A DNA stretch of 64,000 nt from Octopus sinensis (Eukaryota). Under the pieces are notes generated by a model, which was not told where the DNA came from, did not search any database, and saw nothing but the letters and a program-made list of their open reading frames with translations. Below, in pieces: positions 3,811-64,000 of this stretch (position 1 is its first letter; each line of letters starts with the position of its first letter). The stretch spans positions 20,894,001-20,958,000 of the forward strand of contig NC_043023.1 of assembly GCF_006345805.1 (NCBI RefSeq). Direction: 5' to 3'. Position numbers and translations under genes: made by a program.

Positions 3811-4104
3811 TTTCTCTAAATATCATTTGAAAACGTCCACATCCACACCTAACAAATAATTGTGACAATGTAGTGAAATATTCAAAATCGTAAGGTAACC
3901 AATCTGTTAATTTATTAGCTTCTGGTTCGAAATGGAAATCGTGTGTACCATACCACTATGCCTTCAGTGTGGGGGTCGGGTAAATCTTATATAAACGCCA
4001 ACGGAAAAATCCTGAATAATTCATAAGACAGTCTTATAAATTACAGTTTCTACCTGTCTATGGAGAATCACTATGAACTTACATCCACCATTTTGTTCCT
4101 GCTA

Positions 4105-5012
4105 AATTTGTATCATTTTATAATTCTATAATTTATATCATAATTCTATAATTCTATAATTCTATAATTCTATAAGTTATAATTTATATTTTATAATTCT
4201 ATAATTTATATTTTATAATTCTATAATTCAATAATTTATAATTACATATAATTTATATCATAATTATATAATTCTATAATTCTATAATTTATAATTCATA
4301 TTTTATAATTTTATAATTTATATCATAATTCTCTTATTTATAATTACATATAATTTATATCATAATTCTATAATTCTATAATTCTATAATTTATATTTTA
4401 TAATTCTATAATTCTATAATTTATAATTCTATAATTCACAATTCTATAATTTATAACTACATATAATTTATAATAACATATAATTTATATCATAATTATA
4501 TAATTATATAATTCTATAATTTATAATTTATATTTTATAATTCTATAATTTATATCATAATTCTATAATTCTTTAAGTTATAATTTATATTTTATAATTC
4601 TATAATGTATATCATAATTCTATAATTCTATAATTATAATTTATAATTCTATAATTTATAACTACATATAATTTATAATAACATATAATTTATATCATAA
4701 TTATATAATTCTATAATTTATAATTTATAATTTATATTTTATAATTCTATAATTTATATCATAATTCTATAATTCTATAATTCTATAATTTATAATTTAT
4801 ATTTTATAATTCTATAATTCTATAATTTATAATTCTATAGTTTATATCATAATTCTCTAATTTATAATTACATATAATTTATATCATAATTCTATAATTC
4901 TATAATTCTATAATTTATAATTTATATTTTATAATTCTATAATTCTATAATTCTGTAATTTATAATTCTATAATTCTATAATTTATAATTCTATAATTCT
5001 ATAATTTATATC
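4105..5012. repeat. About 900-bp AT-rich minisatellite of attctata/atttata-type units, almost G-free on the + strand
   Basis: Direct inspection. Confidence 0.9.
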
Positions 5013-12128: not shown

Positions 12129-56381
<44,253 letters not shown>

Positions 56382-59984: not shown

Positions 59985-60518
<534 letters not shown>

Positions 60519-61297
60519 ATATGTATATATATATGTATATATATATAACGGGAAGCTTTATGAAAATAGACAAAAGACGAAGGCAGGTTTACGGAAATAA
60601 ACAAAAGACGAAGGCAGGTGGAATACAAACAAACAATTGTATTAGTATGGCGCTCAGGAAATATAAATAAAACAAGTCTTTAACGTTTCGAGCCTCAGAA
60701 AGAAGGAGAGAAAAAAATATGCGTGCAGAGGCTAGCGAATCAACATGGCGATCTGATTTCGGCCAGAAGTCAAAGATCAAACGTGAGACGCAAGAGCGAA
60801 ATTAGGGGAGATAATAGGGTTAAATGACCTCGCTCCAACATAAGAGTGTGTGTGTGTGTGTGTATGAGAAGAGTGTGTGTGTATGAGAGAGTATTAGTGC
60901 GTATGAGAGGTCTGGACGTGTGTATGTATATATGATGTGATGTGTAAAGTCGTATGAGGTAAGAGGGGGGAGGTAAGGGGGGAGAGAGGGGAGGGGAGGT
61001 AAGGGGGGAGAGAGGGGAGGGGAGGGAAGAGGGGGAGGTAATGCCTGTATGCATGTATGCATGTATGTATATATGTATGTATACATATATAAATTTTGTT
61101 TCGGTCACAAGTTTTCTTCTTTTGCTGTATTTGTCCGCTATTTTACCCAGAAATTATTTGTTGAAACAACTAATTAAATTTTAAAATTAAATTTTAAAAA
61201 GTCATACAATGAATTCATATCTTTATTTTAAAACTCATAAGATTCCATAACTATTTTTCTTTTATTATTTTGAAACAAAGGATCTTTTTTCTCCTCA

Positions 61298-63147
61298 TCA
61301 CTTTTCTTCAAACGTTACTTTTAAAGTTACATCTTTGATAAAATCCTCGACTTTTGATTTTAATATTATGAAATATCTACCTTTCTTTGGACTCTCCATT
61401 AAAATTTTCTGGATTGTCCCGGGCTTGTTCGATCGCCATTTCGTCAAATGCTCATTGCAGCGGAGTTTCTTGTAGCAGACAAACAGATCTGCTTCTCCCA
61501 TACCGCCAAACGTAGTAATTTTCACATTCTTCAATTCTGACTTTATCTTCAGTTTAAACATGATTTCTTCCTCAGGGATCGCACTTAGGTCCTCGATTTT
61601 TGAGTTCTGGTGCACTGTTCGGATGTACGAAGACAGATCACACACTTTTATACCAACTTTTTTAAAAACTCTCTCTACCGGTTTAGTATCATAGCCAAAA
61701 TCGTAAGCGGACTTCATGAAGTCGCAAGCGGCCTCAACGAAAGTAGTTGTCGGATGCCAGTAGAAACGATTAGAATGAGCCGCAGCCTTTAAAACCCTTT
61801 TCGTATTCCATCCTCTCCTTCTGGCTAACAGACAGTAAAACCTGTTGAATACCCCACTGACGTAGTGTACGTCCATAAGATCATAATAGTCGCTAGCATG
61901 TATGATCGACATCCCATCGGTTGATTGGTTACACACGTTGCGAAGTGGAACCGTAGACACGTCCTCTCCAATTTCCCACTCGTTAGTCTCCCCTCTGTTT
62001 AAAAACTTCTCGGCTGCCTCTCCAGCCAGGTCACTGAACGATTCGTCGATGCCACCCGACTGCCCCTCGTATATCAAGCCCGAATGTTCCTCCGTGAAGC
62101 AGTGGGTTATTTCGTGTGCAATGATATCAAGACTTACTAGCGGCCGATACTCCTTGTCGCCGTCACCGAACGAGAAGTTTCTTCCGTTGTAAAAAGCATT
62201 CACTATGTTTTGGCCAAAGTGTACGCGGAGGGCCATTGGCAGCTTTTTCACCGGGGGTATCTTCACCCATTCTTTGTACATATTGTAGACGACATTGCCA
62301 TAGAAAATAGCATCGTTTATCGGAGAATAAGCTCCGTTCACTTCATCCTTCGCAGTAGTGTTGCATTTTAAATTATAAATACTTTCTGCTTCATTAGGCA
62401 GGAACTCCTCCCCCTTTAGATTCACCACTGTGACGAACTCGTTGCCGAAATAACAATCATCGCCCTCACGTGTCACTTCCAAATATGGTAGTTCTTCTCC
62501 GTATCTCAATTTACCTATCAAATTGTTACCCCCGACACCTTTCATTTTGTATTTGTTTTTTGCGGTTTCCAGTGTGTTCCATTTTTTAACAAGCATTCCA
62601 TTATTCGCATCGATTAGCATGCAAAATCGATAATTTTTTCCATTAGATACGGCATAATATTGAATTCGATAAACCAAGATGGCTACGTTGTCCTTCACGA
62701 AGATCATCAACTGGAGTTTATCGTAGTCTATGCGGGCCCCTTCCATCGAAAATTTTCCGTAGTTGGCAGCTAATAGCATCACTTCCGGCTCGTTCAAAGC
62801 TGGTACTGTAGAGTTGATGTCATCGTCAAGGTTCTGAGCCAGTCTTCCGGTCACCTGACCAGTGTACACATCGGTATTGGCGTCCGTCTCCACAGTGAGG
62901 CTGGCATCGAATACCGGAAGCCCTCTATAAGTCTCCCCGTACTTTTTGATGATGGTTCCTTGCTCACTCGGTGCCGAGTCCATCAGCGTGACGTCCTCGT
63001 CTTCGGTCAGACCGAATAGGTCACGTGTGGTGATCATGTGACTTGGTTGTCGCTTCATTGTCTCGCTCAAGGTATCCACATTGGACAGGAACACATTCCT
63101 GGCCTGTCGCCATTTTGCTGACGTCACAACGTGGCTCTCCAGGAACG
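61298..63147 (-). CDS. M4 (thermolysin family) zinc metalloprotease, LasB/vibriolysin-like: propeptide + catalytic domain + PPC-like C-terminal domain; 5' exon lies beyond the window or was not found
   Basis: HEITH (62102-62116), GGIDESFSD, DVHYVSGVFN, YSPINDAIFYG and FGDG..YRPLVSLDIIAHE match LasB/vibriolysin motifs. Acceptor ttatctttctag ends at 63148. Uninterrupted 1850-nt frame; AATAAA downstream (about 61222-61227). Confidence 0.93.
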
Positions 63148-63154
63148 CTAGAAA

Positions 63155-63371
63155 GATAATAATAATAATGATAATAATAATAAAAATAATAATAATAATA
63201 ATGATAATAATAATAATGATGATGATAATAATAATAATAATGATAATAATAATGATGATGATAATAATAATAATAATAATGATAATAATAATGATAATAA
63301 TAATAATAAAAATAATAATAACCATAATAATAATAATAATAATAATAATAACCATAATAATAATAATAACG

Positions 63372-63409
<38 letters not shown>

Positions 63410-63492
63410 GATAATAATAATAATAACAATAATAATAATAATAATAATAATAAGATAATAATAACAATAATAATAGGCGATAATAATAATAA

Positions 63493-63535
<43 letters not shown>

Positions 63536-63653
63536 GATAATAATAATAATATAAAATAATAATAATAATAATAATAATATAAAGATAATAATAATAATAA
63601 TAATAATAATATAATAATAATGATAATAATAATAAAATATAATAATAATAATA

Positions 63654-63684
<31 letters not shown>

Positions 63685-63690
63685 TAAAAT
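63155..63690. repeat. (TAA)n tract, intronic to the M4 gene
   Basis: Direct inspection. Confidence 0.92.
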
Positions 63691-64000
63691 TACTAACTTC
63701 TGGCTGAATGCCTTCCCAGAGAGCCATGAACTGCTAACAGAACTGTACAATGATGTTTTGCAACACCCTAGTAGGATGCCTCCTTGGCTAGTTAATGGGT
63801 TAACATTCCTGCTTCCAAAAAGTGAAGAAACAAATGAACCAAAAAACTATAGACCCATAACCTGCTTAACAACTATGTACAAAACACTAACATCTGTCCT
63901 GACGGAATATACCGATAGTTTTTTAACAGACAGCAGCATATTACCTAATGAACAGAAAGGATGTAAACGTGGATCCTACGGCTGTAAAGACCAACTACTC
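63689..64000 (+). mobile_element. 5'-truncated non-LTR retrotransposon RT, R4/Dong-like; runs off the window end
   Basis: NFWLNAF...PPWLVNGLTFLLPKS...PKNYRPITCLTTMYKTLTS...LPNEQKGCKRGSYGCKDQLL, open frame. Confidence 0.85.

Follow-up and report, generated by a model that had tools for sequence, protein, structure and literature searches.

A likely ancient bacterial M4 metalloprotease gene in octopus, shared with other molluscs

Animal genomes rarely contain functional genes of bacterial origin, and each well-supported case shows how foreign genes gain introns, secretion signals and host regulation. The 64-kb stretch of Octopus sinensis genomic DNA analyzed here (hereafter the window, which always refers to the whole stretch) raises the question of whether it carries such a case. 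The original prediction had read one long minus-strand exon as a vibriolysin/LasB-like M4 metalloprotease lying behind a spliceosomal intron, and had proposed that the gene was acquired by horizontal transfer and domesticated. We consider it very likely that the exon belongs to a functional nuclear gene of an octopus of the Octopus vulgaris species complex, that this gene encodes the secreted zymogen of a pseudolysin/vibriolysin-type M4 zinc endopeptidase, and that the family derives from one ancient bacterial transfer and probably serves digestion. The predicted order of domains is a signal peptide split by a phase-1 intron, a propeptide of the FTP/PepSY type, a two-lobed catalytic domain and a PPC tail. 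Residue numbers refer to the 615-residue protein encoded by exon 2.

The minus-strand reading frame is open from position 63727 to a TGA stop codon, which is directly followed by a second in-frame TGA (61295-61297). Upstream of 63147 the frame is a translated (TAA)n microsatellite with a period of 3, and the coding part proper (61301-63145) comprises 615 codons without a stop, in agreement with the roughly 615 intact and intron-free codons that had been predicted. The exon lies in a stop-free stretch of 811 amino acids, to which the microsatellite contributes about one quarter; no other stretch in the 64 kb comes close, the runner-up reaching 301 amino acids. Pfam assigned residues 211 to 352 to Peptidase_M4 (PF01447; E = 2e-22, 80.6 bits versus a gathering cut-off of 22.4) and residues 355 to 499 to Peptidase_M4_C (PF02868; E = 1.3e-25, 90.7 bits versus 24.4). 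A sequence search of the PDB returned Pseudomonas pro-elastase (LasB, 8cr4) as the best match (E = 5.5e-84), with an alignment that includes both propeptide and mature enzyme. Next came Pseudoalteromonas Mcp02 (E = 7e-72) and Legionella ProA (E = 2e-63), and other M4 subfamilies were represented by the much weaker matches to thermolysin (E = 3.7e-27) and aureolysin (E = 4e-9). Structural alignments gave 36 to 40% identity to pseudolysin and vibriolysin versus 21 to 26% to other M4 peptidases (25 to 26% for thermolysin). Judged by its sequence, the protein is much closer to the gammaproteobacterial-type pseudolysin/vibriolysin group than to other M4 subfamilies. The nearest NCBIfam model was that of Legionella ProA (NF045902; E = 9e-89); the score of 298.5 bits remained below the equivalog cut-off of 900, and the predicted protein is thus a relative of ProA and not its equivalog.

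The active site appears to be complete. The motifs HEITH (62116-62102), GGIDESFSD (62056-62030) and DVHY (61873-61862) are encoded on the minus strand, and HEITH, the Glu of GGIDESFSD, the Tyr of LIYEGQSGG and the His of DVHY aligned residue for residue with their counterparts in pro-elastase 8cr4. Across 59 mollusc and bacterial sequences, H344, E345, H348, Y359, E368, D372 and H427 were invariant. The predicted zinc ligands are His344, His348 and Glu368, and the putative catalytic residues Glu345, Tyr359 and His427 are all present. By analogy with solved bacterial relatives, Glu345 would activate the attack of the zinc-bound water, while His427 and Tyr359 would stabilize the transition state. 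Three cysteines (C231, C261 and C474) aligned with cysteines of 8cr4. In the 59-sequence alignment C231 was invariant, and C261, C474 and C502 were conserved in at least 90% of the mollusc and bacterial sequences; these residues could form two conserved disulfide pairs in the mature domain. The protein contains ten cysteines in total, six of which (175, 349, 405, 438, 557 and 563) lie outside the bacterial pattern. In the M4 proteins of one mollusc clade (clade A, described below), a cysteine directly follows the second His of HExxH (HEITHC; C349, 62099-62101), and two more cysteines (C405, 61931-61933, and C438, 61832-61834) are conserved, all three of them missing from the bacterial relatives. 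The HEITHC cysteine could take part in an extra disulfide or provide a free thiol beside the active site.

An AlphaFold2 model built from the 59-sequence alignment had a mean pLDDT of 87.5 and a pTM of 0.79. Its sole internal low-confidence stretch comprised residues 190 to 197, where bacterial relatives cleave off the propeptide. Foldseek comparison of the model with the PDB yielded mature vibriolysin MCP-02 (TM 0.97, root mean square deviation of 1.2 Å, 40% identity) and thermolysin (TM 0.81), and the modeled catalytic domain adopts the two-lobed thermolysin fold. The propeptide matched the propeptide chain of MCP-02 (3nqz_A) with a TM of 0.76 and an E of 5e-12. The Pfam FTP match was weak for the window protein (E = 0.0076, 16.5 versus 21 bits, below the cut-off), and the same domain passes in relatives. 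Taken together, the predicted protein shares with vibriolysin MCP-02 (3nqx, 3nqy, 3nqz), pseudolysin/LasB (1ezm, 8cr4) and Legionella ProA (6ya1) the fold (TM 0.87 to 0.97), the zinc site of HExxH plus Glu, the catalytic His and Tyr, two disulfide pairs and an FTP/PepSY-type propeptide. Unlike these proteins, it is encoded by an animal gene with a spliceosomal intron in the signal peptide, and it carries extra cysteines. If it behaves like the solved bacterial relatives, the propeptide would fold and inhibit the enzyme until autocleavage near residues 190 to 200, and the PPC tail would then aid secretion or substrate binding.

The C-terminal tail required a separate approach, as the Pfam PPC model (PF04151) scored only 13.4 bits versus a gathering cut-off of 25.9 (E = 0.15). 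A hidden Markov model (HMM) built from 16 mollusc tails matched 164 of 167 bacterial homologs with domain E values down to 4e-14, and the matches fell exactly on the regions that Pfam calls PPC in these homologs. Foldseek comparison of the C-terminal 115 residues retrieved the PPC domain 5sv5 (TM 0.72) and collagen-binding domains of collagenases (0.63 to 0.69). The tail HMM and the modeled structure thus identify the tail as a single, strongly diverged member of the PPC superfamily, whereas the bacterial homologs sampled carry one to three clear PPC domains. All protein features named in the original prediction (the vibriolysin/LasB-like M4 assignment, the pre-pro layout, the catalytic and zinc-binding motifs, four LasB-like cysteines and a PPC-like tail) were therefore recovered; the tail proved more divergent than a plain PPC domain, and the six further cysteines came in addition.

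How such an exon is joined to an animal gene is seen from its upstream boundary. The acceptor tttctag/CG (the slash marks the boundary between intron and exon) recurs in the gene model of O. bimaculoides, and the wider context in the window, atctttctag/CGTTCCTGG, is that of the O. bimaculoides locus L004. The closest known protein, P0001 from O. vulgaris, has 16 additional N-terminal residues (MAAC...LLLL) preceding AFLESH, and these residues together with the start of exon 2 constitute a typical signal peptide. When this N-terminus was sought throughout the window, only low-complexity noise was obtained. Because the N-terminal residues of P0001 are encoded nowhere in the window, exon 1 is placed beyond position 64000. 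Gene structures of the relatives were taken as predicted exons joined as found in their loci. In three octopus genes (L001, L004 and L005), exon 1 has 49 nt and a donor G/gtgagt, followed by a phase-1 intron of 2.5 to 6.2 kb and one large exon 2 that is entered at ...tctag/C. Exon 1 measures 55 nt in Argonauta, 37 nt in the bivalve Tegillarca and 31 nt in the gastropod Haliotis, in all cases with phase 1 and one large exon thereafter. The genes of O. bimaculoides, O. sinensis, Argonauta, Haliotis and Tegillarca thus all have two exons, the first one short, of phase 1 and within the signal peptide. The end of the signal peptide is marked by a conserved Ala-Lys/Gln site. The distance from the intron to this downstream site is 10 codons in Octopus, Argonauta and Tegillarca and 12 in Haliotis. 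This near-constant position fits one ancestral intron. The acceptor behind a (TAA)n tract and the signal peptide on an upstream exon, both of which had been predicted, are consistent with these gene models. The AATAAA expected after the exon was found as well, although it constitutes weak evidence in AT-rich DNA.

Database comparison placed the gene among octopus sequences. P0001 (annotated as 'elastase-like [Octopus vulgaris]', 633 amino acids) was the best match with 98 to 99% identity. It was followed by two O. bimaculoides proteins annotated as 'elastase' (85% and 73%), an O. vulgaris paralog (70%), an O. sinensis protein (66%) and a protein from Argonauta hians (62%), while the best identity of bacterial proteins was merely 32 to 36%. 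At the nucleotide level, window positions 61299 to 63215 aligned to L004 with 89.5% identity, reaching 68 nt into the intron. Some matches in the downstream flank were collinear with L004 too, among them a 248-bp tandem repeat (window 54348-55935 versus L004 24228-24413) belonging to a 188/248-bp array that spans 54348-55942 of the window. Of the O. bimaculoides genes, the one known as ZnMP7 (XP_014783435.1) is the nearest relative of the window gene and probably its ortholog; with it the window gene shares 85% of the amino acids, the two-exon structure, the acceptor, the order of domains and a partly collinear flank. The two genes differ at the 3' end: the O. bimaculoides frame (L004 17800-20656) stays open past the double TGA of the window (61295-61300), and the NCBI model P0002 (712 amino acids) appends about 80 residues from a further exon, which could reflect a lineage-specific C-terminal extension or an annotation artifact.

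The dN/dS comparison suggested in the original prediction was carried out by the Nei-Gojobori method. It gave 0.29 versus L004 (dS of 0.26) and 0.16 to 0.20 versus and among the paralogs. Taken separately, the propeptide had a ratio of 0.36, the catalytic domain 0.30 and the tail 0.19. As the values are well below 1 in all parts, they indicate purifying selection over the full length of the protein.

The original prediction had left it undecided whether homologs in other invertebrates would make this an old transfer. With a profile, 17,046 matches were obtained among 1.84 billion cluster representatives, and every named cluster ranking above the first bacterial one (Pseudoalteromonas) was from a mollusc. 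These clusters comprised Ylistrum, Pinctada (two), Ostrea, Haliotis (several), Pomacea, Patella, the chiton Liolophura and a second gene of Argonauta. The cluster of P0008 includes the 'hap' protein of Sepia pharaonis, and further members were found in Tegillarca, in Haliotis and, under the name 'neutral protease', in O. sinensis and O. bimaculoides. The family therefore spans four mollusc classes (cephalopods, gastropods, bivalves and a chiton). A named non-mollusc animal was sought among the relatives and none was found, a negative that falls short of proving absence; likewise, a search with a profile of clade B (see below), limited by its word filter, returned 15 matches, none of which was a non-mollusc animal. 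These mollusc proteins, annotated as 'elastase-like', 'neutral protease-like' or 'virulence metalloprotease-like', share the architecture and the tail of the window protein, and they share the phase-1 signal-peptide intron where this was checked (Haliotis, Tegillarca and Argonauta); they differ from it in being only 30 to 62% identical and in falling into two old clades.

Trees were calculated by neighbor joining (NJ) from corrected p-distances over 558 to 583 trimmed columns, with no outgroup and with a limited set of bacteria chosen by similarity. Molluscs were separated from the sampled bacteria in 200 of 200 replicates for a small set and in 89 of 100 for a larger one. Within the molluscs, two clades were each supported by 100 of 100 replicates. 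Clade A contained the octopods, including the window gene, together with cuttlefish, scallop, pearl oyster and oyster, and clade B contained gastropods, chiton, ark shell, pearl oyster and the second Argonauta gene. Gastropods and the chiton were seen in clade B only. Since cephalopods and bivalves occur in both clades and the intron is common to them, duplication and intron gain would predate the split of the mollusc classes. The homologs in gastropods, bivalves and a chiton, the two old clades and the shared phase-1 intron thus answer the question of age: the window gene belongs to an old, phylum-wide family and is not an octopus-specific acquisition. Two observations concern individual members. 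In Tegillarca granosa, tblastn detected M4-like sequence (L007, 30-209 and 1083-1454) a few kb upstream of the gene, which suggests a tandem copy or fragment. Four further clade A relatives (P0012-P0014 and P0185) are located on the ENA contigs L002 (ERZ25073293, 2.4 Mb) and L003 (ERZ25073280, 0.3 Mb); these contigs are evidently eukaryotic, and the relatives adjoin an endonuclease/reverse-transcriptase-type open reading frame (ORF) and fragments of an MFS transporter.

A bacterial origin of the octopus genes is already in print. In a 2018 report (Liu et al. 2018, Data Brief 19:1274, PMC6011040), twelve O. bimaculoides genes are given as horizontally transferred from bacteria. Seven of the twelve are 'Zn-metalloproteinases' (ZnMP1-7) that are said to be nested among bacterial homologs, and ZnMP cDNA fragments were amplified from hepatopancreas mRNA. 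The title of the companion article begins 'Ancient horizontally transferred genes'. We compared the published fragments with the loci. The ZnMP7 fragment matched L004 best (98.8%) and the window with 88% (61568-61823), the ZnMP1 fragment matched L001 best (98.4%; window 75%), and the ZnMP2 fragment matched L005 best (90%; window 78%). These identities mark the window gene as the counterpart of ZnMP7 in another octopus. As the gene is already annotated ('elastase-like') and was published as an ancient transfer in a sister species, the window adds a species and not a discovery. The report covers one octopus species and, as far as its available text goes, compares no other invertebrate (PMC6011040), so the mollusc-wide distribution and the shared intron may not yet be described. 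Points that possibly go beyond it are the spread over four mollusc classes, the two ancient clades, the divergence of the PPC tail and the signal-peptide intron of phase 1 that the relatives have in common.

The type of propeptide, the two disulfide pairs, the PPC tail and the closeness to pseudolysin and vibriolysin over other M4 peptidases argue for a bacterial origin. Together with the finding that the named closer relatives are all molluscs, they leave the horizontal transfer originally proposed as the best reading. The gene is neither a contaminant nor a recent arrival but a domesticated one, and the transfer most likely took place into the stem-mollusc lineage. In this scenario, one bacterial M4 gene with a PPC tail would have entered a stem mollusc, would then have gained the intron in the signal-peptide region, and would have been duplicated into two clades before the mollusc classes diverged; a renewed expansion in octopods would have led to the ZnMP1, ZnMP2 and ZnMP7 types. 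We give roughly even chances to the history in its full detail, i.e., a single entry more than half a billion years ago, intron gain, two surviving clades and an octopod expansion that serves extracellular digestion. If true, the family would be among the bacterial protease genes that animals domesticated earliest and have kept most widely. The case itself is solid, with a gene that is intact, spliced in gene models, under selection, syntenic and present in multiple copies.

The most likely physiological role of the enzyme is to digest proteins outside the cell, in digestive gland and gut, and the sole expression datum that we found is the O. bimaculoides hepatopancreas cDNA. The saliva/venom and mucus roles raised in the original prediction are still speculative. 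That the enzyme acts in venom or saliva, or as an immune effector, is the alternative that survives best, and we regard it as unlikely, though to be taken seriously. Octopods have several recent paralogs (the ZnMP1, ZnMP2 and ZnMP7 types), a pattern that is frequent in secreted effector families, and the bacterial relatives pseudolysin and vibriolysin degrade host matrix proteins. Such a role is less easily reconciled with the origin of that cDNA and with the presence of the family in grazing and filter-feeding molluscs. It also finds no footing in the papers searched on octopus digestive enzymes and digestive-tract glands (one of them including both salivary glands), in which M4 peptidases, 'elastase' or a vibriolysin-like protein were not mentioned; searches that linked octopus with pseudolysin found nothing, and those with vibriolysin, thermolysin or digestive-gland metalloprotease found nothing specific.

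Vertical inheritance would make a transfer unnecessary: the subfamily would have been present in early eukaryotes or animals and lost everywhere but in molluscs. The age of the family, with its four mollusc classes, two ancient clades and common intron, would agree with this explanation, as would an M4 protein in the transcriptome of the protist Ammonia sp. and the possibility that some close relatives from ENA/Logan belong to other phyla. However, many independent losses would be required, and among the 17,046 matches mollusc clusters were the only named ones above the first bacterial cluster. The full pseudolysin/vibriolysin architecture, including PPC, and the nearness to that subfamily place the genes inside bacterial diversity and not beside it, and in the 2018 report the octopus genes are nested among bacterial homologs (PMC6011040). 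We therefore judge vertical descent to be improbable, and ancient transfer from a bacterium remains our preferred explanation.

It is still less probable, to the point of being a marginal concern, that the window holds a decaying relic, i.e., an intact-looking copy among the paralogs that is not expressed or not catalytic. In its own species the window copy is known from genomic sequence; its dN/dS versus the ortholog is somewhat above the paralog values, and the O. bimaculoides relative lacks a stop codon at the corresponding place. Decay is nevertheless unlikely because the catalytic set is intact and dN/dS is below 0.4 in every part. In addition, the reading frame is open over 615 codons, neither disulfide pair has been lost, transcripts of the O. 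bimaculoides relative are known, and O. vulgaris has an NCBI model of the gene. The intron-free exon 2 and its GC content of 44.5% (52% at third codon positions) compared to 37.6% in the rest of the window (37.8% overall) might raise the suspicion of bacterial contamination, a chimeric contig or a recent transfer specific to octopus, but these explanations were rejected and carry next to no weight, because orthologous or paralogous loci in four octopod assemblies have a spliceosomal intron at the same place, the O. bimaculoides alignment enters the intron with some collinear matches downstream, the dS of 0.26 is that expected for a gene inherited since the two species split, and identity to any bacterium is low. 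The window contains neither gaps nor any N, and the repeats common to it and the O. bimaculoides locus, a reverse-transcriptase fragment and the intron-crossing alignment bear out the host context that the original prediction had set against contamination.

Several points weigh against an ancient bacterial transfer that gave rise to a functional digestive enzyme. The splice junction in the window is predicted and was taken from the gene models of relatives, and exon 1 and the promoter fall outside the window. Zinc-dependent endopeptidase activity is a prediction for all the mollusc members, and the digestive role goes back to one reverse transcription-PCR on one tissue of another species. The NJ trees are rough, the split expected for a single origin reached 89% in the larger set, and long-branch attraction of fast-evolving animal sequences is possible; these trees single out no donor lineage. 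Furthermore, the restriction to molluscs hinges on named database proteins, and some of the ENA/Logan relatives could represent other phyla. Finally, a protein of the foraminifer Ammonia sp. (P0387; EukProt, MMETSP) with 960 amino acids and M4 domains scored 266 bits against the clade B profile and is more distant. It could be a genuine protist M4 peptidase or stem from bacterial contamination of the transcriptome.

Table 1. Coordinates of the M4 metalloprotease gene and its predicted parts in the window
Feature	Position	Strand	Basis and remarks
Intron 1, 3' part, phase 1	63148-64000	minus	Acceptor AG at 63148-63149; (TAA)n at 63156-63687; ortholog intron 5.9 kb
Signal peptide, C-terminal part (AFLESHVVTSA), just ahead of conserved KWRQAR	63116-63147	minus	N-termini of P0001-P0005 and P0007; cleavage site inferred
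Exon 2 (last coding exon), M4 metalloprotease gene	61298-63147	minus	2 nt completing a split Ala codon, 615 codons and stop TGA (61298-61300); 98-99% identity to P0001; 89.5% nucleotide identity to O. bimaculoides ZnMP7 locus L004
N-terminal propeptide, residues 11 to about 197, putative FTP/PepSY type, ending in low-confidence linker 190-197	62555-63115	minus	Pfam FTP weak here, significant in relatives; Foldseek 3nqz_A; pLDDT dip
Mature catalytic domain, residues about 198-500, Peptidase_M4 and Peptidase_M4_C	61646-62554	minus	Pfam, PDB alignment, 59-sequence alignment, Foldseek
C-terminal divergent PPC beta-sandwich domain, residues 501-615	61301-61645	minus	Tail HMM, Pfam, model, Foldseek
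AATAAA, possible polyadenylation signal	61261-61266	minus	31 nt past the stop; second copy at 61222-61227; weak evidence in AT-rich DNA

The coordinates of the gene and its parts are collected in Table 1. A second M4 copy was sought across the window, and none was found. Among ten long ORFs of the window, the only Pfam match other than M4 was a partial reverse transcriptase (RVT_1; 37941-38723, minus strand, E = 7e-10). Outside the gene, the window otherwise consists of microsatellites and dispersed repeats, many of the latter being common to the window and an O. bimaculoides locus. Long (AT)n arrays or regions of low GC content were observed at 51554-52338, 53155-53646, 59986-60141 and 4001-5000 and include a 1-kb stretch with a GC content of 11%.

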